A DNA stretch of 64,000 nt from Chrysemys picta bellii (lineage: Eukaryota), in assembly GCF_011386835.1 (NCBI RefSeq), contig NC_088806.1, forward strand, positions 16,492,001 through 16,556,000, in the 5' to 3' direction. A model generated the notes under the pieces. The model was not told the origin of the DNA, ran no database searches, and saw only the letters and a list, made by a program, of their open reading frames with translations. A program made the position numbers and the translations under genes. Below are positions 38,114-60,880 of the stretch, one piece after another (positions within the stretch are counted from its first letter, which is position 1; each line of letters begins with the position of its first letter).

Positions 38114-38114
<1 letters not shown>

Positions 38115-38146
<32 letters not shown>
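38115..38146. repeat. Compound (CT)n(CA)n microsatellite at the upstream edge of the A/B homology
   Basis: TCTCTCTCTCTCTCACACACACACACACAC read directly. Confidence 0.9.
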
Positions 38147-38287
38147 GAACCAACAGGCCAACTGAGATCTCCACAGTGACACAGAAACAGGTCTCACCCC
38201 TCATTCCCAGCAGCCGTGGCATTTTGCCACTTCCCCACACACACACGCTTGTGCCTTTGGGGGAGGCAGGGCTGGGGAGTCGCCTGC

Positions 38288-38383
38288 CAGAGCCGCTCAC
38301 CTGGGCAGGGAACGTTCTGCTCCGGGCTGCACGGTGACCATTAGATTGTAATTAGTAATTATCCCAGTCCCCGGGGATATAAA
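38288..38383 (+). promoter_or_regulatory. Gene A proximal promoter: conserved CACCTG-containing element, TAAT-rich tract, TATA box
   Basis: CAGAGCCGCTCACCTGGGCAGGG, then TGACCATTAGATTGTAATTAGTAATTA, then TATAAA at 38378. Homologous blocks lie upstream of B, C and D. Confidence 0.75.
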
Positions 38384-38501
38384 TATGGCTCAGTCCTCCC
38401 CCGGGAGCCAGTGCACCAGGTTTGCAGCCCCTGTGCCGCTCCTCACTCGCCTGACACGACCACACGGCTCCCCCCTCAGCTCGGCAGAGAGAAAACTAAA
38501 G

Positions 38502-40003
38502 ATGAACAAGATGCTGGCTCTGGGTTTGCCAGCCCTGCTCTGCTTGGCAACGGGTAAGTCCCGAAACAAAACCCAACAAGGGGAGATTTCCACCCCTGAT
38601 GGGGCAGAGCCTCAGCTGGTGCCAGTCCACAGTTCTTTACCGAGGGCAATTCAATGATAACCAACTATTCTAGCTCAAGGGCAGCCTGTGCTCTGGTGGA
38701 GGGACAGAACCGCCGCCCCTGGAAAGCCAGACTGGCCTAGCAGTGACCTGCCACAGAGGGTCGGATGAAATGAACCGGAGCAGGACAGCCGTTGGGGTTG
38801 GATGGTTCCTGGGGATGGGGAACGCGCCTGTGCACGGAGCATGGCCGATCCGTGGCTGCTCGTTGCCTACTCTCCGTTTTCTCGCCTCTTCACAGCGGAT
38901 CCTCTCCAGTGCAACGGCTGTTTCAAGCTGTTACAGGACGGCAGCTGTAAGATAGGCCAATACACCTGCACGGCATCTCCAGATGAATCCTGCTTCACCC
39001 GCAAAATCACCGCTGGTGAGTGAGAGTGACTGAGGGCACGTCGAGGCCAGGGCGGGAGGGGAAATGTCCAGCTCGAGGAGATACACCCATCGCTCTGCTC
39101 CAGCTAGCACACTGACAGCAGACGTGTAACCGGAGCGAGCGGTGGGAGGGGCCAGCTGCCCCAGTTCGATCCTGCCCAGGGCACTAGACACCAGTGCAGA
39201 CTGCACTTCTGTGCAGTCCAGTGAGCAAAAGATGCCCCATCTCTGGGGCAGTTAGTGCTGGGAGGGGAGAAGTGATTGCCTTACCCTAGAGTGACTTCTT
39301 CTGGCCACGCCGGCTGTGGCACTGGGGAACTGTGTTCATCCTTTAGGGTACGTCTGCCCTAAGGCGGGGGGGGAGAGACGTTGCAGCTCGGGGGAGACAT
39401 CCCCATGCTAGCTCTGACTGTAGCCACAGCAGCGTGAGACATGAGGGGCTAGCCCCCCCCACTCCCCAAGTCTACATGCCTAGTGTCTTGGATGGCCACT
39501 TACTCGGGGAGGCTGGCCTCACCTGCTGCTCGCTCTGGCATGGCTACCCTCTATTCTTAGTGCACTCGCTGGATCAGAGCGAGGGGAATGTCCTGCCTGA
39601 ATTGTAGCCAGACCCTTAGTCCATGAAGATGACTGGGACACTGGGGCATGGGGAGGGGTGGGGGAGTCCTCTAAGGACAGAGAAGGGTCCTGAGCTACAG
39701 GAAGTGGGGTGACAGAGGAGCCCCGGCTGCTGGGAGTCAACAGAGGGGAGGGCAACTCAGTTGGTGGATTCCCCTGGCCCTGTCACTGGGAGGAGGGGTC
39801 TGGCCCTGGCACCCAGCCCTGGGGGCTCAGGTCTCTTTCCCTCTGTAGGGAACGAGATCCTGCGGGTGGAGCGGGGCTGCACTGTGATCTGCGACGACCT
39901 AGTGCTCAACAACTACGACTACAAGGAGATCACCCAGTGCTGCACGGACAGAGCCTTCTGCAACATACACAACCCCTGGCCCCAAGCCCCCAAGGAGGAT
40001 TAA
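38502..40003 (+). CDS. Gene A: secreted PATE/ACRV1-like three-finger (LU-domain) protein, 108 aa; exons 38502-38553, 38896-39015, 39849-40003
   Basis: Canonical GT-AG introns, both phase 1. Spliced product: MNKMLALGLPALLCLATADPLQCNGCFKLLQDGSCKIGQYTCTASPDESCFTRKITAGNEILRVERGCTVICDDLVLNNYDYKEITQCCTDRAFCNIHNPWPQAPKED. It has a signal peptide, 10 Cys spaced C-x2-C-x8-C-x6-C-x7-C-x17-C-x3-C-x15-CC-x5-CN and a hydrophilic C-terminus. TATAAA at 38378, ATTAAA at 40172. The family name rests on recalled human PATE3/ACRV1 spacing and needs BLAST. Confidence 0.93.
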
Positions 40004-40473
40004 GGGGAGGGTGGGGTCCTGGGGCGGCAAGAAAGTCACATTTGCCCTTCGCCCCAGGCCTGGTTCTGGGTTATTCCCCAACTCGCCTTTCCTCATTGAA
40101 AACCTGGCAGGAACCAAGACCGTCCCCTGGCGTCACCCTCAATATCACACTCCTGACATCAATTAACTATAATTAAATTAGGAAATGAGCTCTGCTCACT
40201 GGCCCCGCCCTGCTTCGCCCCGGCCCCTCCCCTGCTTGGCTGCCCGCCTCCCATCTTGCTGCCCCAGGCCCAGCACCCAAACTCTCTGGTGCTTTGCTGC
40301 TGTTCCATAGTTGAAGGTGCCCGTATCAGGGTGACACACTCCCCCCAGCTGTCATTTCAGAGCCTCTGCTGCTGCCCCGTGAGAGTATTAAGGGGGCAGG
40401 ACTGGATTTAGGAGCAGGTGACCAAGGTGACCACCTGCGGTGCCAGGCTTTGGGGTCACCGGGCTTGGGGGAC

Positions 40474-41007
40474 TGTTTTTATTGTTAGCAACGAAATGGA
40501 AAGTAGAATGTTTGAAGTAACATGTTTCAGGTATTCCGTATGTGATTCATTTTGCATTAACCTCCTAGAACAGTGGTTCCAACCTATTGTGGGCCACATA
40601 CGTGTTATGGCCCTGAGGATGTCACATGGGCTGCAGCTCTGTGTTGATTGGATCGCAAGCAGCCCGCAAGCTGGAGGTTGAGAACCACTGTCCTAGAATG
40701 TTCTGGATCTTTGTAGAATCTCATGGAACTTTCCAGACTTTGAGAACGACACTCTCCACGAACTTCCTAGAACGTTGTCAGCCATGCTCTCGTGGGTATA
40801 TAAGGGGAGGGGCATTGCCACTCAGTGAGATATAAGAACAAACTGAAGCGAAGCAAGAGCCCAGCTGCGATATTGGGAACCTTGCTTTGTTGTGTAATTG
40901 TGAAAGTGTACTTGTGTTTTAAGACTTGAAGAGTGTAAGTAGCGACTAATAAAGGACATATTTAATGAGATGCCAGAGATAGCTATCGAACCTCTATCTA
41001 CGCAACA
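40474..41007 (+). mobile_element. Solo LTR nested in the hAT element
   Basis: TGTT...AACA termini, TATATAA at 40797, AATAAA at 40948. The left boundary is uncertain (40474 or 40483). Confidence 0.6.
40571..40690. mobile_element. 120-bp hAT MITE nested in the LTR
   Basis: TIRs CAGTGGTT / AACCACTG and a perfect 8-bp TSD TCCTAGAA. Confidence 0.9.
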
Positions 41008-41822
41008 GGATAAAAGAAATACTGTTACTTCTTTTGCCATGCTTAACATGTAATGTTTGATGACTTTCTAAGATTGCGGAACACAGACTTTTGCTTTCCC
41101 TAATACTGTCTGTTTTCCCACCTAGAAAATAAAAGATGCCCCCAAAGAAGCCTTCAGGAGCTCAGTACAGGAAGCGAAAAGCTCAATTGCAATCTAGTTT
41201 GCAGCAGGGGGCAAATTTTAACTAAAAGACTAGGGTTAACATCCTAAGGCTGTAACACTATTTAATACTGGACCACCCAGTGTTGGTGCACAGTTCCATT
41301 TCTTGATGTCAGTATATTTCAGTTATTCTTAAAATTAAAAAGTTTCTATACACTTAGAGCAAATCATTTGTTTTTAATTTGCTTATATAGGACATGAATA
41401 AATACAGATCCTAGCGTGCAAATTTATCGGCTTCTATGCCAGGGATAAATCACACATGCAAATCGTGCATCAAAGTCATGAAATGGGCTATAAATGCAAT
41501 AAAAAAATAAGGGATTCAAAAGTTTAACAAAGGGAGGGGAGCACTGAACAGGTTCTTCCCTAGGGGCCATTTGGTCTAGGGCACTGTTAAGGGAGGCCCC
41601 TCTCCCCAGACCTTGCTCTGTGCAGGGTGGGCAGTTTGCCAGCTTCAGAGGCTACAGTGCAGAGGGGACAACTTGCATGGCAACCAGTGGGACCCACTCA
41701 ATTCCCCCTCCGTCCTCCATGCTTCCCTGTACACTGGACCCCAGCAACACCGTGAGCCTGGTGTCTGCTCAGCACAGACCCCTGAAAACTGTAGACAAGC
41801 CCTAAGACGGATACCCAGTCCA

Positions 41823-41825
<3 letters not shown>

Positions 41826-41888
<63 letters not shown>
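41826..41888. repeat. (GA)n microsatellite, about 31 units
   Basis: Uninterrupted GA run; it explains the ERER/SLSL ORFs. Confidence 0.98.
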
Positions 41889-41893
<5 letters not shown>

Positions 41894-42639
41894 GCTGCCA
41901 GCAGGACAGCCTTCTTCTCACCTCCAGAGGTGAGGGTTAGCTGGGTTGACAGGAACTTACAAATGATTGCAAAGAGACATGGTAAGTGAGGGACTCTGGT
42001 GGTGACAGACAAGCTTTCGAGCTAAGCAGAGTTCTTCAGGTCTGGGAAAGGTACACAGAACATCCCAGCTAAATACAATATGGAACAGATTGTTTAACAT
42101 AAGTAGTTAACACATATTCTAAGGGACCATTCAAGGTGAAGTGACCCATTAACACCCCTGCAGTCACAAGACAAAAGATGGAGTTAGTGGATTACAGATT
42201 GTTGTAGTAGGTCTTATAAACAGGTATATCACTGGACAAATGCACCATGAAACCAATGATATACCTGAGACACATCGTGATATTTTCATCCTCTGGACAG
42301 ATGACCTAAACTTCCTCATATATTTCCACTACAACTTCAACCACCACCACCCATCCATCAAACTCTCTCTAGAGCACTCCTGCACCTGTATCAGCTTCTG
42401 GATTCTATTCAAGCTGATTGTAGTGTCCTACAGACAACTATGTACAAGAAACCCATATATCACCACACATACTTTCACAGATCCAATAATCACCCCAAAC
42501 ACCAAGAAATCTGTTATCTACCACCAGGCACTCAGATACCACAGAATATGGTAGAAAGGAGGAGAAAGTCTAGGATACACACTAAAAACTGCCTTTGCCA
42601 AACAAGGACCCCCCAGAGCAGTACATCAGTTACTCCTGG

Positions 42640-43405
42640 GGAAATTCTATGCCACTGCGTGTGCGCAGAATTCATGTCCCCCACAGATTTCTTTGCTTCC
42701 CTGCAGAAAAATGACTTTGACAGGGAAGGAAAGTGGAGCTGCAAGAGCAGTCACGCACCACTCCCTAGCTGCACAGGTACATCGTTTCAGGCAACTGGAG
42801 CACCCGAAGGAGACATAAATCTCTGTGGGGCTGGGGACATCCCAGCCAGTGGCTCCTATCCTGAGCCAGGATCAGCTGCTAGTCCTGGCTGGGCTGGAGG
42901 CAGGAGAGGACAGGACTTCCTCTTCCCCTGCAAGTAGTGGCTGGTGCTGTGTCAGACCCACCCCCAGAAACCTCCCCCAGCTGCAGGAAGCTCAGCATCC
43001 TCCCCTGCTTCCTCCCCACATCGCTCTTCACCTGTGGGGGGAGGGGTCACTGTACCGGGAGCTGTACAGACACAGCTGTGGGGAGTGTGTCTTGCTCCCC
43101 CATGCATCTGGACCTCCCATCCCAGACACCCCTGCCAAGCCTCACCCCGTACCCCCCCCAAGCCCTCCATACCCAAACCCCACCCCACTGAACCTCAACC
43201 CCTGCATCTGGAGCCCCCTGCTTTCAGACCCCCCCAACCCTGCACCCAGACCACCACCCACTGAGCTCCCTGCACTCAAACCCCCATTCTGATGAGCCCC
43301 ACCTCCCCGCACCACCCCGAGCCCCCACATCCAGATCCCCATGCCACTGACTTCCAACTAGCTGCACCCAGGGCACAGAATTTTTAATTTTTTGGTGCAG
43401 AATGA
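42640..43405. mobile_element. DNA-transposon-like insert with C-rich internal repeats
   Basis: GCAGAATT motifs near both ends and CCCCAAGCC-type repeats; it interrupts the Penelope remnant. Confidence 0.5.
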
Positions 43406-43409
43406 ATCC

Positions 43410-43790
43410 TAGAATATCAGGGTTGGAAGGGAGCTCAGCTGGTCATTTGGTCCAACCCCCTGCTCAAAGCAGGACCAACCCCAACTAAATCATCCCAGCC
43501 AGGGCTTTGTCAAGCCTGACCTTAAAAACCTCTAAGGAAGGAGATTCCACCACCTCCCTAGGTAACCCATCACCACCCTCCTACTGAAAAAGTTTTTTCT
43601 AATATCCAACCTAAACCTCCCCCACTCAACTTGAGACCATTACTCCTTGTTCTGTCATCTGCTACCACTGAGAACAGTCTAGATCCAACCTCTTTGGAAC
43701 CCCCCTTTCAGATAGTTGAAAGCAGCTATCAACTCTCCCCTCACTCTTCTCTTCTGCAGACTAAACAATCCCAGTTCCCTCAGCCTCTCC
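43410..43790 (-). mobile_element. CR1 LINE 3' fragment
   Basis: Reverse complement of the CR1 3' end (AGAATATCAGGGTTGGAAGGG) and of FRLDIRK-type coding sequence. Confidence 0.88.
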
Positions 43791-44061
43791 TCTCTTCCCT
43801 CAGGAGTAATCAGTGGAGCCACCCCAATACCCCTAGAGAGCTTGCTTCAATACAATACAAAAGCTTGTCTCTTTCACCAACAGAAGTTGGTCCAATAAAA
43901 GATCTTACCTCACCCACTTTGTCTCTCTAATATCCTGGGACCAACACAGCGACAACACTGCAAACAAAAGTGATTGCGAAGAAAGATTACGGTGGAGGTA
44001 ATGGGAAATACGAGCAGAGAACGTTCTGGTTTTACCCTCCTTGCTCTGAGAGCTATGTACC

Positions 44062-45576
44062 TGTAAGCAGAGTCAGGATGAGCTCTACCCTGACATCTGG
44101 TGGTGAATTATGGCGAGGGTGGAAAAGAACTCCAGGGGCTGATCTTGTTTGCATAGGCACACCCACTCGCCTGGCATGAAACCACAGCAACTCAAAGTGG
44201 TTACTTTGGCTGGTGTGGGATCCCCAGTTTCTCTGTTATTGGGGCAGGAAGAATAAAGTTTTGTTACCCTGATTCTGTGAATCAAGGCCAGTGGAACTGT
44301 TGTATGACAGAAGGACTGAGTGAGTCATTCACCATTACCTAAGTAGCATTTGCTTGTCAAGGGGCATGGGTTACAAAACCCAATGAATTGAGAGAGGATG
44401 GGGACAGGTATTTGTACCTGATGGTGTGGCCCCCTTCCAGAGGGGGTTGAAACACCAATTGCACTACCTCCTCTCTCCAATGTTGAATGTCAGAGCTAAC
44501 TTTGATTCCCTTAGGAGTCTAGTTACAGACTGCTGAGCTGAGTTCACTTTGGGCCAATAGTGCACCAGCACTGGGGCTCCCCTACTACTAGCTGAAATCA
44601 CTAAGAGCTGAAATCACAAAAGAGCTAAAGCTATTTAAGAGCTGAGATCACTGAGGCTGTGTTAACTAGTGGGGGAGCCTGAAGCTATATTGCTAAGCTA
44701 ACTTAGCTTAGCGGGGGTGAGCGGAGCGGAGCGGCTCACAGGTCGGTGAGCGGAGCGGCTGGAGGAGCAGCTAGCAGAGCAGAGCCTTGTGGGAGCGGCC
44801 CAAGGGACGGCTGGAGCGGAGCGGAGCGGAGCGGCTCACAGATCGGTGAGCGGAGCGGCGCAGCTCACAGGTCGGTGAGCGGAGCGGAGCGGCTCACAGG
44901 TCGGTGAGCGGAGCGGAGCAGCGCGGCTCACAGGTCGGGGAGCGGAGCGGAGCGGAGCGGAGCAGCTGCCAGAGCAGTTCGTGGGACTGCGGGTGGAGTG
45001 GAGCAGTTTGTGGTGAAGGCTGCAGTGGAACCCCACGGAGAAGCAGCCGGTTGGCCTCGGATCACGTAAGGTGCCCCTTAACACCCTGCTCACCCCCCCC
45101 TTTGAACTCTGGGGCTGCACTGATCATGGACAGAGACTTTGGGGGGTTGTCGGACTTTTGGGACTTTTGTGATTCTTGGGTTGCTGGACCCAAGAGACTT
45201 TGGGATTGGTGGACTTTTGGGACTTTGGTGATTCTTGGGTCGCTGGTTTCAAGAACCAATGGGAGAGGACACGGCCCAATTTGCTGGGGTGGGTCTTCGC
45301 TCATGGTTTGGTCTAAAAACTCTAGTTGTGGTGTTTTTTCCATTTAATGCTGATGTTGTTTACCTCATGTTATTAAACATTTTCTGTTACACTCAGACTC
45401 CGTGCTTGCGAGAGGGGAAGTATTGCCTCTTAGAGGTGCCCAGGGGGTGGTATGTAATTGTCCCAGGTCACTGGGTGGGGGCTCGAGCCGGTTTTGCATT
45501 GCGTTATTGAAACGGAACCCCTAGATACAGAACCCGGCCCTTGTTGCTGCCAACTTAGATGGGCAGAAGGGTTACA
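44062..45576 (+). mobile_element. Complete solo LTR (Gypsy-like), 1515 bp, with internal (GGAGC)n/31-mer tandem array at about 44715-44965
   Basis: TGTAA...TTACA termini and a perfect 4-bp TSD TACC on both sides. Orientation is not certain. Confidence 0.9.
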
Positions 45577-45899
45577 TACCTTTGGGTGACAGATTAAATA
45601 ATGCTTTGTTTTGAAGATGCTTTTTCTGAGTCATTTTAATCCGTTGCTGGTCACAGGCTCCGGGGGCGGGGGGGGGGGGAAGGGCTTGAAAATGCTCAAC
45701 CCAGTTGGGCCTGCCGATTTAATATGGTTGGTAAAAAAGGGGGCTGTAACCCAAAGACCCACTCTAAGAGTTGTTGGACCCAGAGGTTCTGCCCAGAGGG
45801 GAAGCCCGGCCTGTTACCTGAGGGGTGCACTCAAGAGGGGCAAAAAGGGTCTAAGGTGCAGTTTGCCTGGTAACCGTAACACACGTGATCTTGATTGCT

Positions 45900-46240
45900 T
45901 TGTCTCAGCGATCTGGCCTCTTCATTACTTACCACTCCTCCAGCTTTTGGAACTTCTGCAAACTTCATCAGGAATGATTTCATACTTTCTGCCAGGACAC
46001 TGATAAAAGTGTGACGTAGTGTAGTAGGGCCAAGAACCAGTCCCTGCAGGACCTCACTAGAAACACACCCATTCGACGATGATTCCCCATTTACAAATTA
46101 CATTTAGAGACCTATCATTTAGCCAGTTTTTAACCCATGTAATATGTGCCATGTTGATTTTGTATTGTAGTTGCCTCTTAATCAAAATGCCGCTTGGCAC
46201 CAAGTGAAATGCCTCACTAAAGTCTATGACATCAACACTC
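45900..46240 (-). mobile_element. CR1 RT fragment
   Basis: Reverse complement of DVxxxDFSEAF, GVLQGLVLGP and KFAEVPKAGG-like segments. Confidence 0.75.
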
Positions 46241-46359
46241 TGTGCGTGTGGATGGGCGGCTGGCTGGACGGGCAGGCGGCATATTTGGGAATATATTTAT
46301 TTGCTTCACAGAATTGCATCTGTTGACCATTGACCTTGGCCTGATCTTGGTTTTGAGTA

Positions 46360-47600
46360 AAACACAATCTATTTGCTAAGCATGCATAAAGAAATAACAA
46401 TGAATGTTATTATCGCAACTGTAACAGCCAGTAGAAGAACCAAAACACATGTATTAAAAATAGGCTTAGCTATAGGTTTTAAGCATTAAGGGCTTAGAGT
46501 GAGGCCTAACTGGAGTAAGTATTATGTGCTTAAGCAAAGGTTATGAAGTTTAGCAATATGCATCTTGTGATAGGTTAGCAATGCATTTTGTGATATACGC
46601 GTAAACCACAAACAAGCAGATGGGTACTTTTGCAATAAGTTAACAATGGAGCTATCTGCATTGACGTATCAAAACTATTGGGACATTCATTGACGCAAGT
46701 GCTTGCATTGGTGGTTGGAAGTTGAACTATGGTACCACCATACATGGGCAGGGCTGAAACCTTATCAAATATGGTCCCAGACATGAGAGGGTGAAATAGG
46801 AAAAGGTGTATAAAAATGTGTTTATCCAGTCTGTTGTTGGGGCACCAGGGGATGACATGGGACAGCCTGTCAGGATCCCAACAAGGGCAGTCAGGGCCAA
46901 AGGTCAGAGCAGGGGCAAACCTGAGGTTGGAAGTAGCAGAGGAGTTCATAGTCAGGCTCCAGGCCAGGGTCAATCCAAGTCAGGAGGCAAAATCCAAATC
47001 AAGCTGAGGTCAAAGCCTGAACTTCAGGAGCAAAGAGCAGGAACGGGTCATGGCAGCTACAGGACTGCCCCTTAGGTTTATATAGAGTAGACAGCCAATC
47101 AGGAGCCTTGAGGCTGCTGTCTGTCAAACCCTTGAGATGGAACTTCCCATAGGCTGCGTCCATAGCAGATCATTGGAAGTGGCAAGCAAACTGGCTATAG
47201 CCTGGGTAACAGCCTGGTGATGCTACCTACCTATTAGCTCTACAGACCTGGGTTCTAGACCCTATGGGGGCTCCAGACAATGGATAGAAAGCTTGGCCCT
47301 GTACTCTCCTCCTGCGGTGGGCTCCACTTACACTCTCTTCCATCTTTGTTTCTAATGGTCCAGGAGGTTGTAAGTCCCCACAATGAAATACTTGTAAGTA
47401 TGAACAAAGCAGGCACCACCTTACTTATAATTATGTACATTGATGTTTCTATTACTTCAGATATATTTGTCTGCACCAACTCAAGCTCATAAAGTCTCTG
47501 TGTCCTCCATCAATTGCACCTTCTCACTTAACTGTAACCAGCTACCTGAAAAAGAACTGGTTATTTGTGACAAGTGCATGCTTCACCCCAGGACATTCTT
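46360..47600 (-). mobile_element. Degenerate endogenous retrovirus env-like remnant, interrupted by an LTR-like insert (about 46832-47279)
   Basis: LLVCGLRVYHKMHC*PITRCILLNFI resembles the class I env SU motif FxCGxxxYxxLxxxxxxxCxLxxL. A downstream hydrophobic helix reads VLVLLLAVTVAIITFIVISLC. Stops and frameshifts are present. Confidence 0.45.
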
Positions 47601-47794
47601 TTACCATTGTAATAACTGATCTGATTTTTTTCTTAATAAAATAGAACCCAACAGGCCAATCGAGAGCTCCACAGTGGCTCAGGAACAGGTCTCACCCCTC
47701 ATTCCCAGCAGCCGTGGCACTTTGCCACTTCCCTCCCGCTTGTGCCTTTGGCAAAATGCCCCTGTGGGGGAGGCAGAGCTGGGGAGTCGCCTGC

Positions 47795-47890
47795 CAGAGC
47801 CGCTCACCTGGGCAGGGAACGTTCTGCTCTGGGCGGCACCGTGACCATTAGATTGTAATTAGTAATTACTCCAGTCCCCGGGGGTATAAA
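47795..47890 (+). promoter_or_regulatory. Gene B proximal promoter (near-copy of A promoter)
   Basis: Same element and TAAT tract as A; TATAAA at 47885. Confidence 0.75.
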
Positions 47891-48009
47891 TCCCTCTCTG
47901 TCCTCCCCCTGGGAGCCAGTGCACCAGGTTTGCAGGCCCTGTTCCGCTCCTCACTGGCCTGACACGACCGCACTGCTCCCCCCTCGGCTCGGCAGAGAGA
48001 AAGCCAAAG

Positions 48010-49374
48010 ATGAACAAGATGCTGGCTCTGGGTTTGCCAGTCCTGCTCTGCTTAGCAACGGGTAAGTCCCGAAACAAAACCCAACGAGGGGAGATTTCCA
48101 CCTGATGGGTCAGAGCCTCAGCTGGTGCCAGACCAGTCAGCTGAGGTCTTTACCGAGGGCAATTCAATTACAACCAAGTATTCTAGCTCAAGGGCAGCCT
48201 GTGCTCTGGCGGAGGGACAGAGCTGCCCCTGGAAAGCCATCCACCAATGTGGGGGAGGGGCATGGCTGGTTCCACGCGGCCGGGAAGCTGTTTTGGTGTC
48301 TTTGTCCGGTCACCAGTCTGGGCCCGGCTGCTTGTTTCCTACTCTCTCTTCTCTCTCCTCTCCCACAGCTGCAGCTCTCCAGTGCAACGGCTGTTTCATG
48401 ATGCTACAGGATGGCAGCTGTATGCTAGGCAAACACACCTGCACAGCCGCGCGGGGAGAATCCTGCTTTACCCGTAAAATCACTATAGGTGAGTCTGGGA
48501 GGCCAAGGGCCCCTCAGAATGCAATTTAGGAGCTGCCAGGATGTGAGGGAAGAACACCTTACTCTAGCGTGACCCCTTGTGGCCAAGCTAGCAGCGGTGC
48601 TGGGGAGGGCCTCACAGCCCAACCCTCAGCTGGAGCATCTACACAGCTATTTTTAGTGCCATAGTCTGTCGACCTGGCTCTGAGATTTGCTGCTGCTCGC
48701 TAGGTGGGTGCCACATTCGTCCCTTAATCAAGGACGGTGACTACGGGGATGGCGACAGAGCAATCCGAGGCGTGACTGAAGCACTGTAGACAGGCCAGAG
48801 CTAGCGGTCATCTAGCTAGCTTGACTAACACTAGCAGGGAAGCTGTGGCATCAGGGGTGACAGCGCAGCTAGCCACGGGCGTATGCACCCGGAGTCCCGG
48901 GGGGGCTCGTACGACCTGTGCTGACGTAGCTGCCCTGCTGTTGTTACTGGAGCTCGCTAGATCACCGCTAGCTCCGGCCAGTCTACAGCGCTTCAGTCAC
49001 GGCTCTGACTGCAGTGTAGACAGACCCTGTGACACTGGGACAGGCAGAGGTGGGTGTCCTCTGAGGACAGAGAGAGGGACCAGCAGGTTTCTTCCCCTGG
49101 AGCAGTGGGAAGAGAGTGGCAGGGGAGACAGAGGAGTCCTGGACAGAGGGGAGGGCAGCTCAGCTGGGAGGAGGGGCCTGTCTCTGGCACCTGGCTCTTG
49201 TCTCTCTTTCCCTCTGCAGCGGGCTTTATCAATCGTGTGGAGCGGGGCTGCACATCCATCTGCGAGGATACAGAGATCCCTGAAGACTACTACAAGGACA
49301 CCACCCAGTGCTGCACAGATGGGGACTTCTGCAACATCCACAACCCCTTCCCCAAATTCTCCGATTATGCCTAA
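48010..49374 (+). CDS. Gene B: secreted PATE/ACRV1-like three-finger protein, 108 aa, closest paralog of A; exons 48010-48061, 48369-48488, 49220-49374
   Basis: Spliced product: MNKMLALGLPVLLCLATAAALQCNGCFMMLQDGSCMLGKHTCTAARGESCFTRKITIAGFINRVERGCTSICEDTEIPEDYYKDTTQCCTDGDFCNIHNPFPKFSDYA. Exon sizes (52/120/155) and Cys spacing are the same as A. TATAAA at 47885. Confidence 0.93.
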
Positions 49375-51631
49375 GGGGAGACTGGTGTTCAGGGCTGGCA
49401 GGAGCTCCCTTCACCCCACCCCTGGCTCTGGGTTAGTCTCTCACGCCCCTCGCCTCATGTAAAATCCAGCAGGACCCAAGACCATCCCCTGGTGTCATCC
49501 TCAATCACACGCTCCTGTTAGCTACAAATGATATTTAAATTAGGAAATGAACTCTAATCTCTGGCCCCGCCCCACTCCCCCTGGCCACGCCCTGCTTCCC
49601 CTTGGCCTCTCCCCTTGCCTGGCTGCCCTCCTCCCATCTTGCTGTCCCAGGTCCAGCACCCAAACTGGTGCTTTGCTGCTGTTCCGTAGTTGAAGGTGCC
49701 TGTATCCCCCACAGCTGTCGTTTCAGAGTTGCCGCTGCCCCGTGAGAATATTAAGGGCCCCCCCACCCTTCCCCAGACATCGCTCTGTGCAGGGCAGGCA
49801 GTTTGCCAGCTTGGGAGGCTACAGTGCAGAGGGGACACCTTGCATGCCAACCAGGGGGACCCACTCAATTCTCCCTCCATGTTTCCCTGTACACTGGGCC
49901 CCAGTGACACCCTGAGCCTGGTGTCTGCTCAGTGCAGACACCTGAGACAGAGCAAACACAGCACAACCCACAGCTCTCAGCTCCAGACAGGCTGTAAGAG
50001 GGTCGATACCAGGTTCTTCCCCCGGCAACTAGTTGGCAGAGCCATGCCTGGGACAGGAACCAGGACAGCAGGGCACTCAGGGATTTCCTCCTCTGCAGCG
50101 TGCCCAGCTCCCTGCCTGGCTGGTCCCCCGGAGCTCCCCCTGCCCTCGGAAATGAGTCCTGCCCGTCTCCCTGCCATGATCCAAACCCCACTGTGCCTGG
50201 GGCAGTCCTGATCTCTGAGTGATCCTGGAATGGGGTCACTCTGTACAGATCCCACCATTCCATTCAGCCCCCACACACTCTGAACCGCTGCCTCCCTGCC
50301 ATGCCCAGGGTGGGATCCTGGCTTGCTGTATTTGCAGCTGAGATTCTGCTGATGAAACACCTGCGCTTATCTCCCTCTTTGTCATATTCTGCTCGTTTCT
50401 TTCCTTGCGCAATAAACCCTCTGATTGTCACAGAGCTCTCAGGGCCTTCGTTTCTTCATACACAGTCAGGGGACAATGTATTTTCAGACCCATATTTAGG
50501 ACAGTAGCTTCTATCACCACCCCTACGTGTCCAAAAATGGCAGAGGTTCTGCTAGGACATCTCCCTCTGGTAGGTAAAGCAGAGTGCCTGGCCCTGGGGA
50601 ATTCACCCAAGTTCTTCCCCTTGGTAGGGCGGGTCTAAGTGGAACTCTTAGGCCCCAGTGATGGCAGCAAAAGGTCTGGGTTCAACGTTCTCGGGGTTCC
50701 TTCCTTAGCTGACACCGACTTGATCCCCTCACCAGAAACCAATGAAATGATGTACCCGTCCCTGAGCACCTTTGGTGGGCAATTCTTCCCCATGCACCAG
50801 GACCGAGTCCAGGGGTTAAAACAAAGAGAACTTTATTAGGGTAGGGGAAAAGGGGAGGCAGACAACAGAATGAATTTGGGGAAATCAGTAATTAACGAAT
50901 TCTAAGGAGGTAAAACTCCTGCCCCACAAAGTATCTTAACAGCAGTCCCACCCTCAGTCCTCGGGAATGGTGGACGATATGCTGGCCCTGGCTGGGCTGT
51001 TGGGACCGAACTGGTACTGCTGGACTCCCAGCCACTGCCCGAGGGACACGGAGCACTGCCCTGAGGGGTGTGGGTTACACAGGCCCCAGGCTCAGGGCTG
51101 GCTCCAGGCATTCGTGGGAGCCTGGCGGATGCAGAGGGGATTGAGCGGGGCTGTCTGGTTGGCAGGCACGGTGCCCCATCCCTCAAACACCAAGGGAGGG
51201 CACTGGAGCCTTCCCCACTGGCAAACTGCCTACCCTGTTCAGAGCCCTGCCAGGGGAAAGGGGCCCCTTAATGCTCTCAGGGGGGTAGGGGCTCTGAACG
51301 ATAGCTGGGGGGGGTCACCTTAACCCACAGCACCACAACAAATCCAATATCCAAGGGAGTCATAGTGCTGGGCCTGGGCCAGCGAGACACGGGGAGGGGG
51401 CAGGCAGGCAGGACAGGGGTGAAAGGGGAGGGGGCCATGGGAAGGGGAGGGGCCAGAGGACAGGAGAGGGCAGGCATGGGCCACAGCAGGTCTTGGATTC
51501 TGGTGGGTTTTTCATCAGACTGGGGAAACCAGGAGAGAAACCAGGAGGGACGGGGGAGGGGAGAACGTGGACTTCCTCCAGAAGTGCAGCTGCCCCCAAG
51601 TGAGTGGGAAGGGAGGCGGCGTCCATGGCCC

Positions 51632-53791
51632 CTAGGCATTGCAGAAGTCTTCAGTGCAGCAGCGGAAGTCGTGATGGATGAACGTGCCTCCGACTTGGTC
51701 CTGGCAATCTCTGAAGCAGCCCTGCTGTGCATAGAGAGGGAAGTTCCCTGGAAAAAGAGAGAGAGCCATGAGTCCCCAGGGCTGGGCGGCAGGGACAGAC
51801 GCCTCCTCCCTAGGACTGTGCCAGAGGAATCCAGTGTCTGGTCCGGCCCCCCAGCCAGAGCATCACCAACTGAGCTGCCCCCCCGTCTGTCGATAGCCAG
51901 GAACCATGTCTCCTCTGTCACCCCCCGCCATTCCCTTCCCACTGCTCCAGGGGAAGAGACCTGCTGGTCCCATTCTCTGTCCTCGGGGACTCCCCAACCC
52001 CTGCCCTTCCCTACAGTCACAGTCACTGTTCTGGACTAAGGGATGAACATGGCTCCCTTCCGAGCTCCCCAGTGTCCTGCCAGCTTGGCAGCCATGGGTC
52101 ACTCCAGGCCCAGCAGAGACCCTCCTAGTCCCCACCCTCCCAGCGGCTGAACTTGCTGCCCTCCAAAACCTTGAGCCCCAGAGATGGGGCATCTGTGTTC
52201 ACTGAAAACACCAGCCCGGGGAGCGGGGGGGGGGCGTGCCTGCCACCCGCACCTACCCAGGAGGAGTGTCTGGAGGTAGCAGGATTCCCCCGGAGCTGCC
52301 TTGCACATGCTTTTCCCTGCAATACACGTCTTGTTCGGCTGCTGTCTGACACACACGTGGCACAGGAGGGCGCCCGCTGCGTGACAGGAGAGAGAAGAGA
52401 ATGACACAACTCGCCGGGCGCAGAGGGCCACCGGAGATGGGCAGGGAAATAGAGTCACCCGTCTGATCAGGAGCGTGGTGACAGGGAGCTCTCGTGTCCC
52501 TGTGTTATAGAAAGGCTGAGTGTGAATCGGCATGGGGAGCTGACCAAGCCAAGCCCATGAAATAGAAACTCATCAGGATACACACACTAGCTCTGCCTCT
52601 GACTCTCTAAATAATTGACTTATGAATTCACCACAATTGTTCTAGTGGCTTTTCAGATTTTTAAAAGGTACATCGCTGTGTTTGTAAAGCTTTTTCCTTC
52701 CTCTTTTGTTGTCCCAGGACCCAAAGAAACAGGTGTGGAAACTGACTAATTGACTATACCCAGGAAATACTGTAACTGACTTAACAGAGGGCTTAGAAAC
52801 ACAAAGTAAATTGGGAGGAAATAGGAAAATACCTCTCTCTCTGATCCTTTCAGTTACAATGAGTTTTTAATTTATTAATCTAGTAGTTAAAATATTTCCA
52901 ACAGTGTGATTTCTATGTGGAGGGTGAATCAAACCAATCTGAAGACCCATTCCAGTTTTTCTGTGCTGCTTATGAAAGAGTTAGTGAATATTTTCAAGTG
53001 CGTGGGGGGAAAAAAACCCATTCAGCATGAATCTCAAGGAGGTCAGCAGCCAGTCAGATCTCTCTATTCCGCAATCCCTGTGGCAGCATATAATCTTTCC
53101 TACCCCTATAATTTTATTAAAAATTTAATATAATGTGAAAATCACAGAGTGACTCACGTAAGTGATTGGCACTGGCTTCTGCTCACCATTTTGCAATACA
53201 TGTCACACACTTCTTTGTCTTGGAGAAAAGTACTGGCAACATTCACTGCTCAGGTCAGCTCAAAATCCCCCTCACTTGTGAAACAAAGGGGCTAGGTCTG
53301 TCTCTGCCAACTGCCTGGATTCAGCACAGCTCGACTTAGCGACTGCCAGAGACGTTTCTAACAAGCTCATGGCCCTGCTGTATTTGGCCATGTTTGGGAG
53401 GCATGTCGCTGGTTTGCAGAACTCAACAGCCCTGTCTCAGTCTTACGAACCCGTCCATTTCCCTGTATTGGCTTCAGAACACTGCTGATGTTATCTGTCC
53501 CTCCGCAGGTCCTTCCCTAGGCCAGCCTGGCTTTGCCAAGGCATCTGTCACTAATGCAGAACACAGGCTGCTCTTACACTACAGTGGGTGAATCCCCTCC
53601 CTAACCAACAAAGGCCAGCTCCTTTGCTGCTGTACATCATCCTAGCTAGCTCCACTGACGTCGATGGGCCAGCTCCCCGATGAAGCCGAGAATCTGGCCC
53701 CTTTGGGGACGAATTGGTCAGTTTCGTTTGGGGACTTACCCGTTGCGAAGTACAGCAGGGCTGTGAAAACAGGAACCAGCATCTTGTTCAT
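51632..53791 (-). CDS. Gene C: secreted PATE-like three-finger protein, 95 aa; exons 53740-53791, 52257-52376, 51632-51747
   Basis: Spliced product: MNKMLVPVFTALLYFATAGALLCHVCVRQQPNKTCIAGKSMCKAAPGESCYLQTLLLGNFPLYAQQGCFRDCQDQVGGTFIHHDFRCCTEDFCNA. It has 10 Cys, ends CNA-stop and has GT-AG phase-1 introns. A TATA-like TAATATAA lies at about 53899-53906 (-) and a candidate AATAAA at 50832-50837 (-). Confidence 0.92.
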
Positions 53792-58089: not shown

Positions 58090-60880
58090 ATGAACAAGCT
58101 CTTGGTTCTCGGCTTCTCTGCCCTGCTCTGCTGTGTCTCAGGTGAGTCCCTGAAACAAAACAGGGGGGCTGGGAAGCTAACTGGCGACTGGCAGGAGGCA
58201 GAGCGGGCTATGCGATTTTGCCCTCTCCAGGTTGAAACCAGCTGTGCCCATGACGTTCCTGCCAATGGGATTGGCCCTTTACACTTTCCATGGCCATTCT
58301 GCTGCGCTGGGGCATAAAATCTCCCTGATTCCAGGTTTACTCCACACTCCTTGCAAATTAACACAGGAATCAGAGTCTCAACGTTCCCCCGACACCTCCG
58401 GGAGTGACTGTCCAGCCCCTTCCTTAACAGCAGCAAGTGCCTGCGCTGCAGTGACAGGATTCCTGGCGGGCCCAGGGAATAGGGGTAACTGGATGAAATT
58501 AACTGTCCTGTGCTATACAGGAGGTCAGACTAGATGATCTACGTTCCCTTCTGGTTTTAAAATCTAGTCTCTTATGAACCGGATCTTTCCAAGGTCTGCA
58601 AGCAGCAGATTGCAAACCCACACCCCCGTGCACACTGTGCTAGTTCATTCCATGCAGCGTATCCAAGCTGCCTATCAAGGGCATGGGAACGTCCCTGGAG
58701 ACACGGAACACAACTAACAGAGCGGTCCAGCAGTTACTGTCCTTGTGTTGCATTCATAGCGCATTGCACAAAGAGCTCCTGCACTTCACTGCTGGATGGC
58801 GACTAACAGCATTTGTCTCCTGTGTAACCAAACCCCTGCCAGATGCTGGCAACTGGCTTCCTGTGGGCTCTGGAGACACTGCTTAGCGGTCATGGGGAGA
58901 GCCGTTGGTTGCCAGAGACCCTCTCCACACCACAGCCCCCACTCGTCTTTGTGTTACGTGCCTCTGTCCTTAGGGATTGGAAACCAACTGTTGCCCAGCC
59001 TTGCCTCCTGCATTATAGCCTCTAACAGGCTTGCTTCCCCCTAGTGGAGGGACATTGGCATGGGCTACTGCCAGCCCAGGGAAAGATTTACCTTGATCAC
59101 GAGCTGACTCTTTCGCCTGGCTTGCTTCTCCGCAGGCCTCTTCTTTGGCTCCATCTGCATCCAACCTGCTCTTTGTGGGGCTGTCTTTGTTGTCACCTGG
59201 CACTCTCTCCATGGCAGGTGCATGGGGAATTCTGTGGCCTTCGCCCCTAACTGATTCCTGTCTGGCTCTGTGTGGGTTTTTCTTCCAGCTGAAGCCCTTC
59301 GATGTACCGTTTGCCAAAACAAGATACCCGTCTTCGGCTGCATCAAAGGATTGGGCATCTGCCACCCTGCGCCAGGGCTACCCTGCAAATACATCAGAGT
59401 CTATACCAGTATGTATGTCCTGAAACGGGCACTCACCAGGGGGTGGCTTATAGCAGCTCACTCTGCCGGGCCCCAAATGAGATATCCCTTAGTGAGCCCT
59501 TGTGGCCAAGGAATGAGATGAGTCTCGCCTTCTGGCTGGGTGTCCAGGCAAGGGCTCTTGGAGCTACCTACACAGCATTCTATTTAACCCCTGCTTCCAG
59601 AGCTGTTGGGTCAGGAACTTGGAGTGACAGTAATGGGCTGTGAAGAGCTACTTCCCTCTCTCCAAGGAGGGTCCATCCTAGGGCCAAGACGGGAAGAGGG
59701 CTGGCTTTGGAAAGATGGCTTAACTGCATGCACACCAGGCCAGCAGGAGCCATGAGGATCAATGGAGACACTGAACCCATGGCCAAAGGGGGCCTTATTC
59801 ACCAGTACCAGCCCATGCAGTGCCATAGTGGGTGCGCTGCACCAGCAAACCCAGGCAGAGGACACAGACTAGTACTGGGCTCTTCTTTAGAGCCTCCCAA
59901 GAATCTCAAACAGTGAAATGAATGAATGGAAGCCACAACATGCCTGCGAGGTAGGTGAGAAGACTATATGGGGCATATCACCCAGTTCTGAAAGGCAGTC
60001 ACCTTGGGGAACACAGCAGCTGTTTAAGTGGGGACAGCACTTTAGGGCAGGAAATAAAGAAGAATCTGGTAGCCCAGTGAAATGACATTAGGAACAGTCC
60101 ACTCAAAGGTTGTGTGTGTGGCTGAGACACCAGTGTTTACTCCCCTCTTCCTATCAGAAGGAACATGGGAGCTTCAGTGAGCATCTGGGAGCACTTCAGA
60201 CCTAAATCCCAACTTGATAGTGCTGGGATCCATGCTGAACCCCCCCAGCTATGTAACTGGCTTAGCTTTTTGTCCCCATCTCCAGTGGGTACCCAAACGC
60301 TGAGCTCACAGAGTAGGACTGAAGAACATTGGTTGGTTGCCATGCTATTGTTGGGAGTGGTCCTTTGGAGAAGACTTTAAACCAAGCTCTAGTCTGCTCC
60401 AGCAGAATTTAGCCATTTTCCCCAGCACAGAGTTATGTGGATAACCCCATGGGTCCTGATCTTTAATGATCCATATGTGTTCACACTGTAGAGTGGGGCA
60501 GCAAGAGCAGTTCTTTACCTCCATGTTCTTTTGAGGGTCAGCACTCTCATCTCTTTCTTGGCCCACGTGTCTTGTTGGCCTAAATGTTAGATCTAGCCCG
60601 AAGAGCAGAGTGAGAGGAAATGCGTGCATAAACTATTTCTGGTTAGACACTCCACCTTTGCCACTGAGTTGGACTCAGCAGGCACTTGTGAGAATCTTGG
60701 AAGGAGTCCTCGTTCCTGAGTGCATTGTCCTGATGTGTTTTCCCTCCCTACACAGCAGGCATCCAGTTTCATTCACAGGCAGATTGTGCTGTGCAAGGCG
60801 ACAAATGCAACATCATGGAGCCAACGAAGTCTGGCCACCGCCAAATTTCCTGCTGCAAGACTGACTTCTGCAACAGTTAG
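58090..60880 (+). CDS. Gene D: secreted PATE-like three-finger protein, 98 aa, most divergent paralog; exons 58090-58141, 59289-59408, 60756-60880
   Basis: Spliced product: MNKLLVLGFSALLCCVSAEALRCTVCQNKIPVFGCIKGLGICHPAPGLPCKYIRVYTTGIQFHSQADCAVQGDKCNIMEPTKSGHRQISCCKTDFCNS. It has 10 mature Cys and ends CNS-stop. TATAAA at 57985, AATAAA at 61129. Confidence 0.92.

Follow-up and report, generated by a model that had tools for sequence, protein, structure and literature searches.

Gene conversion at both gene ends as a probable cause of exon divergence exceeding 5' non-coding divergence in two tandem Ly6/uPAR paralogs of the painted turtle

Why are the mature-peptide exons of two neighbouring genes more diverged than the non-coding DNA directly upstream of them? 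This question is raised by paralogs A and B, two adjoining genes of the painted turtle (Chrysemys picta bellii), each of which has three exons and encodes a single-domain secreted Ly6/uPAR (three-finger) protein of 108 amino acids. They lie in a 64-kb window, i.e., the whole stretch of DNA that was analysed (Table 1). All intron borders of A and B are GT..AG, the spliced models equal RefSeq XP_065426513.1 (A; P0007) and XP_005294786.2 (B; P0023), and both splices of A (38553|38896 in contig 25 and 39015|39849 in contig 27) were found exactly in RNA-like contigs (run X15). The original prediction attributed the pattern to positive selection on exposed loops and named homogenisation of the 5' region by gene conversion as the alternative. 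Its counts are exact: A and B differ at 2 of 52 nt in exon 1, 26 of 120 in exon 2 and 47 of 155 in exon 3, and at 37 of 108 amino acids, only one of which is in exon 1, with all Cys fixed (11/11). In exon 3, with split codon 58 included, 6 codons differ purely synonymously and 24 residues are replaced, as had been counted; the corresponding numbers for exon 2 are 7 and 12. The replacements are concentrated in the tip of loop II, loop III and the C-terminal tail, and in five codons every position differs. The mature peptides of A and B are 60% identical, the signal peptides nearly identical. For the promoter and the 5' part of intron 1, estimated by eye at 85-90%, the measured identities are 91.7% over 349 aligned columns of 5' flank and 5'UTR (87.2% by BLAST with gaps) and ~90% over the first ~176 nt of intron 1; the 3'UTR is 82.6% identical over aligned columns, where ~78% had been estimated. 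The alignment scores of A and B range from 763 to 1378 vs. 25-30 for the shuffled null, a contrast far beyond chance.

In A and B alike, the mature Cys are at positions 23, 26, 35, 42, 50, 68, 72, 88, 89, and 95, the ten-Cys LU spacing, with LQCNGC as the first and QCCTDxxFCN as the last motif of the domain. The three-exon layout is that of the family, with the signal peptide in exon 1, the LU domain across exons 2 and 3, and phase-1 introns. On the Toxin_TOLIP profile (cutoff 21.2) B scores 23.4 bits, above the cutoff, and A 19.6, slightly under it; exon 2 alone reaches 24.2 (A) and 21.7 bits (B) on UPAR_LY6, both under the cutoff of 24.8. The best match by sequence to a solved structure in a PDB profile search is PSCA (9u9n_A), with a marginal E of 0.016. 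An AlphaFold2 model was too poor for a fold search (mean pLDDT 52; 68-78 for residues 50-90); in this low-confidence model two beta hairpins with tips at residues 58-59 and 79-82 match the expected loops II and III. Both proteins are predicted to lack a GPI-anchor signal, with 12-13 hydrophilic tail residues between the CN motif and the stop. Judged from their sequences, A and B classify as members of the secreted subgroup of Ly6/uPAR (LU, three-finger) proteins. The names given to the turtle proteins by the NCBI pipeline are those of mammalian secreted Ly6/uPAR proteins (PATE, SSLP-1, SOLD1, the C-terminal domain of ACRV1/SP-10, and PSCA), with which A and B share the ten-Cys LU domain, the signal peptide, the lack of a GPI signal after CN and the clustering of the family, although similarity to these proteins is marginal (Pfam scores around the cutoffs).

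Table 1. Features of the A/B locus and of paralogs C and D (positions within the window).
Feature	Position	Strand	Remarks
5' high-identity block of A	38146-38729	+	promoter, 5'UTR, exon 1, first 176 nt of intron 1; ~90-97% to B 47643-48239
5' patch	38303-38578	+	A orthologues of other emydid-like organisms 4-7% off Chrysemys A, with B-type letters
Gene A exon 1	38502-38553	+	52 nt, with start codon and signal peptide; donor in phase 1
Old diverged core of A	38730-40204	+	remainder of intron 1 through exon 3, plus first ~200 nt of 3'UTR
Gene A exon 2	38896-39015	+	120 nt; loop I and first strand of loop II of LU domain; UPAR_LY6 24.2 bits
Gene A exon 3, coding part	39849-40003	+	155 nt; loop II tip, loop III, CCxxxxxCN, 12-13-residue tail, TAA
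3' high-identity block of A, part 1	40205-40394	+	~87-96% to B 49566-49757
A-only 1.2-kb stretch splitting the 3' block	40395-41597		insertion in A or deletion in B
3' high-identity block of A, part 2	41598-41785	+	86-90% to B 49766-49945
5' high-identity block of B	47643-48239	+	alignment to A
Gene B exon 1	48010-48061	+	52 nt; spliced model equals XP_005294786.2
Gene B exon 2	48369-48488	+	120 nt; UPAR_LY6 match below cutoff
Gene B exon 3, coding part	49220-49374	+	155 nt; Toxin_TOLIP 23.4 bits (whole B protein), above cutoff
3' high-identity block of B	49566-49945	+	alignment to A
Paralog C	51632-53791	-	exons 53791-53740, 52376-52257, 51747-51632; 95 aa
Paralog D	58090-60880	+	exons 58090-58141, 59289-59408, 60756-60880 (exon 3 acceptor picked by length conservation); 98 aa

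The identity profile of A against B is a mosaic with sharp edges, with 90-97% in a 5' block, ~50% in the core introns, 70-78% in the exons and 87-96% in a 3' block. The 5' block, which in A includes a TATAAAT in the promoter (38378-38384), ends at 38729, with an abrupt fall of identity to ~50% at 38730. In the core, the counterpart of which in B spans about 48240-49565, the introns are ~45-65% identical, which is the level of random sequences, and the exons 70-78%. Most of intron 2 is unalignable between A and B, as is intron 1 in its 3' half; consequently, introns outrun exons within the gene body. The Kimura two-parameter distance (K2P) separating A and B amounts to 0.088 for the 5' flank and to ~0.10 for the 3' block. 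In toxin-type genes introns and flanks would be expected to be uniformly better conserved than the mature exons; here this applies only to the 5' and distal 3' blocks.

The silent sites of the coding region lead to the same division. In exons 2 and 3 dS between A and B is ~0.53 (21.4 differences over 56.5 sites), ~6 times the divergence of the 5' non-coding DNA, although this estimate is based on only 90 codons and is noisy, and maximum likelihood estimates are unstable; in exon 1 dS is 0.15. Orthologues diverge equally (~1.5%) in core and flanks and, therefore, an uneven mutation rate does not explain this gap. Pairwise dN/dS is 0.55 for the whole gene (bootstrap 0.31-0.96), 0.54 for the mature part (NG86; 0.29-1.02), 0.26 for exon 2 and 0.87 for exon 3 (0.38-2.06), the latter not significantly different from 1; hence, the A-B pairwise NG86 comparison yielded no dN/dS above 1 for the mature peptide. 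Diversifying selection on exposed loops, of the kind known from snake three-finger toxin or reproductive genes, by which the mature exons would outpace neutral non-coding DNA, would be in line with the clustering of the replacements in the loops and tail and with the whole-codon changes, and there is a precedent in viperid toxin genes, with introns at >85% and exon segments at 12-50% (PMC2474615). A partition of loops plus tail indeed gives an omega of 1.9 (dN 0.76, dS 0.40), but this value is non-significant (0.69-6.8) and the partition was picked after the data had been seen, while the upper bound of the whole-gene omega is below 1. The silent sites and introns of the core have diverged as much as the replacement sites or more, which selection on the protein cannot bring about.

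The distribution of both proteins among turtles also bears on this. A protein search recovered only two groups, A and B. The A type occurs in emydids, geoemydids, tortoises, Platysternon, one sea turtle, and the pleurodire Emydura, and the B type in 13 species, 5 of which are sea turtles. Of the 36 mature-peptide differences between A and B, 29 are diagnostic between these orthologue groups, and in either group the residues that differ in the loops and tail are fixed, even across the split between sea turtles and testudinoids. Mature A is 100% identical to that of Trachemys; mature B is 100% identical to that of Malaclemys and Terrapene, 92% to that of Caretta, and 92-98% across families. Rapid turnover of the proteins between related species was thus not found, mature A and B being identical between close genera, and among the variants listed for three relatives none falls in exons 2-3. 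These observations argue against selection on the loops, whereas two others could be cited in its favour. Firstly, A evolves several times faster than B, differing by 14% (86% identity) between Chrysemys and Mauremys vs. 2% for B, and an episodic speed-up in A is possible. Secondly, the stem branches between the two groups (0.37 + 0.18) are long relative to the crown depths, which indicates that the proteins changed more rapidly in the period directly following the split. An old burst of loop selection right after the duplication is possible, but as the explanation for the A/B pattern we regard diversifying selection as unlikely. The duplication of A and B before the crown turtles is supported by values of 85/59, and an AU test did not reject a position of Emydura outside A+B (p = 0.335). 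The mature-peptide cores split at least before sea turtles and testudinoids parted and, with moderate support, probably before the crown turtles.

Exchange between A and B can be traced in the 5' region of relatives of Chrysemys, i.e., organisms C-F, the kinship of which was inferred from the share of sequence words in common. The distance of the A orthologue from Chrysemys A in three emydid-like organisms (D, E, and F) is 4.5-6.9% in the 5' region and 0.7-1.8% in the gene body (Fisher tests for the 5' excess, p = 7e-5, 3e-4, and 8.5e-5, respectively). The divergent part is a promoter/5'UTR patch in D and E and the whole 5' module in F. In D and E the promoter is represented by just two contig paths each, both differing from Chrysemys A at no fewer than 12/175 and 12/180 sites, while one long A-anchored contig across the gene body has 27/1805 (D) and 32/1822 (E) differences, and 0/70 sites differ in the segment 38146-38215. 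An RNA contig of F has 18/403 differences in the 5' region vs. 5/673 in exons 2-3 and the 3'UTR. As judged from the variants listed and the contig counts, most of 12 promoter differences are B-type. Site 38428 is A-type in Chrysemys, organism C, sea-turtle A, and Pangshura A, and B-type in D, E, and F; the linked pair 38495/38497 is A-type in Chrysemys, organism C, sea-turtle A, and E, and B-type in D, F, and Pangshura. Because these states run against the species tree, repeated B-to-A patches are needed. In all three organisms orthology is broken within the tract, with orthologues that are unusually different and carry states of the other paralog, and the A-B divergence of the DNA concerned (0.088 and ~0.10) is far below the exon dS. 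The B-type letters and the raised 5' divergence point to a conversion tract in those lineages. Codon 4 is Met in A and B of Chrysemys and organism C, and also in paralog C, and Ile in both genes elsewhere among turtles; Met is the derived state. Turtles have a slow molecular clock, running at about a third of the human one (PMC4054807), so that a flank K of ~0.09 corresponds to roughly 100-150 My. Several A-specific 5'UTR states date back to about the sea-turtle split, and Chrysemys itself may have experienced little or no conversion since about that time.

Could the two blocks instead be alike through purifying selection, acting on regulatory elements common to both genes and on a signal peptide under constraint, with no exchange at all? 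Such selection has been proposed for salamander PMF genes and their UTRs (~98% conserved vs. ~30% amino acid identity; PMC6487043). Conservation is highest in exon 1 and its borders in all four paralogs (67-83% vs. 47-59% for exon 2), the signal peptides of A and B are nearly identical in all turtles sampled, and parts of the 3' block can be made out on the 3' side of paralog C. However, the promoter/5'UTR patch differs by 4-7% between orthologues, three to five times above the introns, and the 3'UTR of the A orthologue (6/397, 1.5%; run X13) diverges like the gene body (1.5%, mostly intron), i.e., neither evolves more slowly than neutral. Furthermore, in neither paralog C nor D is the 5' flank conserved further upstream than about -100, and the spread of linked A- and B-type states against the species tree does not fit constraint. 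We therefore consider this explanation very unlikely.

Gene conversion is a better reading than ongoing positive selection. Of the original interpretation, the alternative has held, as 5' patches were seen directly in relatives and a 3' block can now be added, but its favoured cause has not, given the high dS, core introns that outrun the exons, a dN/dS below 1, and loops that are ancient and fixed. It is probable that A and B are ancient tandem paralogs with ends homogenised by non-allelic gene conversion and cores kept distinct by purifying selection. The mature-peptide cores would have split long ago and purifying selection would then have maintained each as an orthologue group of its own, while non-allelic conversion would have copied both gene ends between A and B, giving the block of promoter, 5'UTR, signal exon and 5' intron and that of 3'UTR and 3' flank a much younger common ancestor than the core. 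What shielded the core from conversion may have been introns too dissimilar to align, or selection that disfavoured mixtures of two specialised proteins. With two ages inside one locus, exon divergence exceeds 5' non-coding divergence and fast protein evolution is not the cause. Alternatively, the whole unit was duplicated ~0.09 substitutions per site ago, after which one 1.5-kb core was swapped a single time for that of a distant third paralog. A single replaced core is a simpler account than separate events at the two flanks, the edges are sharp on both sides, and the 5' and 3' blocks are almost equally diverged (K ~0.09-0.10). Nevertheless, we think such a chimera quite unlikely: the 64-kb window holds no donor with an A- or B-like core, paralogs C and D being far more distant, the protein search yielded only the A and B groups, and the patchy exchange in several lineages is confined to the 5' block, which fits conversion of the flanks. 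This scenario, too, invokes ectopic exchange, the same mechanism in another variant, and not selection.

Read as conversion of the gene ends, the A/B locus would be an unexceptional example of a process already known. Exon divergence exceeds intron divergence in gibbon L/M opsins with dN not above dS, which was explained by conversion together with purifying selection on exons (PMC3213168). Like primate L/M opsins, A and B are tandem paralogs with exons more divergent than the adjoining non-coding DNA and dN not above dS, an old duplication according to exon trees, young-looking non-coding DNA, and tracts outside the functionally diverged exons. However, homogenisation in the turtle genes has reached their ends (promoter to 5' intron 1; distal 3'UTR/flank) but neither intron 2 nor the 3' half of intron 1, and the period involved, 100 My or more, is far longer. 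With snake three-finger toxin genes, known for accelerated evolution (ASSET; PMC2474615), they share the fold family, the three exons with a signal-peptide exon, near-identical signal peptides, loop-clustered differences and some whole-codon replacements. Toxin introns are, however, >85% identical throughout, whereas the core introns of A and B are unalignable, their silent sites are saturating and their orthologues strongly conserved, without sign of ongoing acceleration; moreover, A and B are not venom genes. The plethodontid PMF pheromone genes (PMC6487043) are likewise secreted three-finger paralogs with UTRs much more alike than the coding parts, but there the conserved UTRs have been ascribed to purifying selection and the low coding identity to positive sexual selection, with many young isoforms, while between orthologues the UTR blocks of A and B evolve no more slowly than neutral DNA and their coding parts are old and conserved.

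The 52- and 120-nt exons of A and B recur in paralogs C and D. A weaker copy of the 3' block (part 2) is present 3' of paralog C. The 1.2-kb stretch that occurs only in A is transposon-like by eye.

The neighbouring genes A and B of Chrysemys picta bellii lie 9.5 kb apart on the same strand, and each encodes a predicted secreted Ly6/uPAR (LU, three-finger) protein of 108 amino acids with a signal peptide and ten cysteines in Ly6/uPAR spacing (LQCNGC ... QCCTDxxFCN). As read from the sequence, both proteins end in a 12-residue hydrophilic tail and have no GPI signal. Once spliced, the models match RefSeq XP_065426513.1 (A) and XP_005294786.2 (B) exactly; the full-length searches were made with the identical database proteins P0007 (= A) and P0023 (= B), and the exons were searched separately. 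Both introns of A (splices 38553/38896 and 39015/39849) are precisely removed in contigs of the RNA-like run X15. The proteins are borderline for the LU and snake-toxin-like models of Pfam; B scores above the Toxin_TOLIP cutoff and A slightly below it, and exon 2 alone falls slightly below that of UPAR_LY6. PSCA was the top solved-structure match by profile (E = 0.016). A structure model built from a 22-sequence alignment was poor (pLDDT 52), and the assignment of the loops relied on the cysteine framework together with the two hairpins of this low-confidence predicted model. This turtle Ly6 gene pair is hitherto undescribed.

Positions in the window of the LU genes and of the blocks of high identity that flank the diverged core of A and B
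Feature	Position	Strand	Size	Remarks
Gene A, exons 1-3	38502-38553, 38896-39015, 39849-40003	+	52, 120, 155 coding nt	GT..AG borders
Gene B, exons 1-3	48010-48061, 48369-48488, 49220-49374	+	52, 120, 155 coding nt	GT..AG borders
5' block	A 38146-38729, B 47643-48239			90-97% identity in the sliding profile; abrupt end
3' block	A 40205-40394 + 41598-41785, B 49566-49945			87-96% identity; starts about 40205
Paralog C	53791-51632	-	95 aa	intact three-exon LU gene
Paralog D	58090-60880	+	98 aa	intact three-exon LU gene

The counts on which the original prediction was based were reproduced exactly: A and B differ at 2/52 nucleotides in exon 1, 26/120 in exon 2 and 47/155 in exon 3, and at 37 of the 108 amino acids (one of them in exon 1), with all cysteines conserved, and exon 3 holds six silent-only codon differences against 24 residue replacements. 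A sliding comparison of the two genes bore out the statement that the 5' end is more alike than the exons (91.7% for flank plus 5'UTR over 349 aligned columns; about 90% for the first ~176 nt of intron 1) but not the idea that exons outrun introns. The profile is a three-part mosaic of a 5' block, a core and a 3' block (see Table). In the core, identity is only 45-65% in the remainder of intron 1 and in most of intron 2, no more than random sequence gives when scored in the same way, so that in the gene body it is the introns that outrun the exons (78% for exon 2, 70% for exon 3); the 3'UTR is 65-78% identical over its first ~200 nt. More alike than the exons are the two ends only. A shared transposon as source of the 3' block was rejected because the block has single-copy depth and occurs in the same order 3' of paralog C, a further LU gene of the cluster.

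Positive selection on exposed loops, which had been put forward as the cause of this contrast, is not supported. For the single A/B pair (NG86 with bootstrap), dN is 0.238 and dS 0.436 over the whole gene, giving a dN/dS of 0.55 (0.31-0.96), with 0.26 (0.10-0.60) for exon 2, 0.87 (0.38-2.06) for exon 3 and 0.21 for the mature part without loops and tail; a post hoc partition of the loop II tip, loop III and the tail reached 1.9 (0.69-6.8), which is not significant. Silent sites tell the two parts of the gene apart: dS is 0.53 in the mature part versus a K2P of 0.088 in the 5' flank and a dS of 0.15 in exon 1, and selection on loops is unable to drive change at silent sites. An uneven mutation rate was also rejected, since the divergence between orthologues is ~1.5% in core and flanks alike. 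Given a mature-part dS far above the distance of the 5' flank, and no raised mutation rate in the core, the two ends and the core differ in age. The alternative offered in the original prediction, i.e., gene conversion homogenising the 5' region, is thus the one supported, and it is extended here by the mosaic and by 5' patches in relatives.

These patches also bear on the possibility that the 5' end is alike in A and B through constraint. Contigs from three DNA runs and one RNA-like run of relatives were compared with Chrysemys A over 38146-40400; among the DNA runs, organisms D and E gave clean comparisons. Their gene body is covered by one long A-anchored contig each (38596-40400 in D, 38579-40400 in E) with 27/1805 and 32/1822 mismatches. 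The promoter and 5'UTR (38303-38477) follow exactly two paths in both, the summed depth corresponding to two contigs with none hidden, and both paths show at least 12 differences from Chrysemys A over 175-180 sites. The adjoining contig (38449-38625 in D, 38449-38603 in E) has 7 differences in 155-177 sites, and the D segment 38146-38215 has 0/70; a second contig there carries the upstream flank of B and its six differences. The A-transcript contig of organism F, anchored by the upstream (CA)n of A and an A-type exon 2, shows 18/403 differences in the 5' region versus 5/673 in exon 2, exon 3 and 3'UTR. Fisher tests of 5' region against gene body gave p = 7e-5, 3e-4 and 8.5e-5 for D, E and F. 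A 5' patch whose divergence between orthologues is three to five times that of introns is not under constraint, and point mutation cannot yield 7% in the available time, because the B copy of the same sequence is nearly unchanged. The share of B-type letters (nucleotide states of Chrysemys B; 8/12 among the variants listed in the 5' region) was rejected as direct proof of conversion, since new mutations in Chrysemys A alone would already leave about half of them B-like; the argument for conversion rests, therefore, on the density of differences and on outgroup states.

The latter were taken from Lepidochelys (P0026) and Pangshura (P0005), database models that translate the 5'UTR of A as coding. 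Position 38428 is A-type in Chrysemys, organism C, Pangshura and Lepidochelys, with the B letter in D, E and F, whereas at the linked pair 38495/38497 (Lys-Leu-Lys versus Lys-Pro-Lys when translated) the A-type letters occur in Chrysemys, organism C, E and Lepidochelys and those of B in D, F and Pangshura. Such a pattern conflicts with the species tree and requires at least two B-to-A patches. The tract in D has its 5' limit between 38215 and 38377 and its 3' limit between 38578 and 38593; its length, about 200-380 nt, is ordinary for a conversion tract. At codon 4, Chrysemys and organism C have Met in both A and B, as does paralog C, and elsewhere both genes have Ile; Met-4 is a derived state common to paralogs of one lineage.

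Word-index searches with the exon 3 reading frames and P0007 returned turtle proteins only, which fall into two groups. The A type was found in Chrysemys, Trachemys, Terrapene, two Mauremys, Pangshura, Gopherus, Chelonoidis, Platysternon, Lepidochelys and the pleurodire Emydura, and the B type in 13 species among the matches listed, five of them sea turtles. Diagnostic between the groups are 29 of the 36 mature-peptide differences, including the group-fixed stretches GNEIL versus AGFIN, DLVLNNYD versus DTEI(P/T)EDY and the two tails. The mature A peptide and that of Trachemys agree at 100% of positions, and mature B is 100% identical to those of Malaclemys and Terrapene and 92% to that of Caretta. 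In the tree the groups stand apart on long stems (0.37 and 0.18) with shallow crowns, and the A subtree matches the species tree out to Emydura. The A/B split certainly predates the separation of sea turtles and testudinoids and probably predates crown turtles; for duplication before the pleurodire split, an AU test did not reject the alternative (p = 0.335). The long stems point to an early phase of faster amino-acid change, which, judged from one pair with saturating dS, may be due to relaxed constraint or to selection. Among turtle orthologues A evolves several times faster than B (mature-peptide difference of 14% versus 2% between Chrysemys and Mauremys), and a long branch (0.082) on the stem of tortoises and geoemydids holds much of this excess.

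Several of the 5'UTR states specific to A go back as far as the sea-turtle split. The rate of evolution in turtles is about one third of that in humans (PMC4054807), so that K ~0.09 in both blocks translates into roughly 100-150 My. Homogenisation of the painted-turtle blocks, or a single replacement of the core in one copy, may thus date from about that time; both events are ectopic exchange. Later patches are mainly found in lineages other than Chrysemys. A more far-reaching scenario, which we consider rather unlikely, is that an ancient duplication was followed by a short burst of positive selection on the loop II tip, loop III and tail, producing two functionally distinct secreted LU proteins, after which recurrent short-patch conversion within the cluster left a shared cassette of promoter, 5'UTR and signal peptide exchangeable between the paralogs. 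Paralog C, because it carries the Met-4 codon, may then have been a donor too. If this scenario were true, diverged proteins would have been co-regulated for >100 My.

The contrast between exons and promoter in A/B is an ordinary, well-understood evolutionary pattern. The nearest known parallel is the primate L/M opsin pair, where exons are more divergent than introns with dN not above dS and where conversion combined with purifying selection on exons is the accepted cause (PMC3213168). Snake three-finger toxin genes resemble A/B in predicted fold, gene structure and identical signal peptides, but differ from A/B in having introns that are conserved over their full length (PMC2474615). For the PMF pheromone genes the conservation of UTRs has been ascribed to constraint (PMC6487043), whereas the orthologue data argue against constraint for A/B. 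Paralog exons that are more diverged than their promoter are, by themselves, no sign of positive selection; where gene conversion has homogenised part of a locus only, such a comparison mixes DNA of different ages. For turtle biology, there are two old, conserved secreted Ly6-type genes, with two more in the cluster, and the secretion and regulatory ends of A and B exchange sequence. A warning for annotation and phylogenetics is that trees based on exon 1, UTRs or promoter of this family will mislead.

Paralogs C and D both lie downstream of B, and their first two exons measure 52 and 120 nt as in A/B. They were of no use for polarising the A/B promoter differences, being too diverged. Exon 1 is the best-conserved exon across the four genes (67-83% versus 47-59% for exon 2). 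A and C match at ~80% at the 3' end of intron 2 and in pieces of the 3'UTR, with no match in the exon 3 coding sequence.

In Chrysemys A an upstream ATG at 38385, directly after the TATA box and in frame with the start codon, opens a stop-free stretch of 39 codons (38385-38501); B has no ATG there. The gene model of Lepidochelys kempii (145 aa) translates the 5'UTR of A as an N-terminal extension, as does that of Pangshura tecta (136 aa) from a later ATG. Contig 25 of run X15 (38150-38552, with the exon 1-exon 2 splice) reaches upstream beyond the TATA box into (CA)n and represents either an upstream start or read-through transcript, or a contig path mixing genomic DNA and cDNA. A 1.2-kb stretch of A that is absent from B (40395-41597) interrupts the 3' block; by eye it is transposon-like, with a short ORF beginning MPPKKPSGAQYRKRKAQL near 41135. 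An X15 transcript contig extends at least 245 nt beyond 40400 and, therefore, the 3'UTR of A may read into this stretch. The A unit is bracketed by two microsatellites, (CT)n(CA)n at 38114-38145, immediately upstream of the start of A/B homology, and a 65-nt (GA)n at 41826-41890, just past its end. Intron 2 contains repeat-derived DNA in both A (39060-39600), where many unrelated contigs of other turtles touch briefly, and B (48640-49020), where it includes a long imperfect palindrome.
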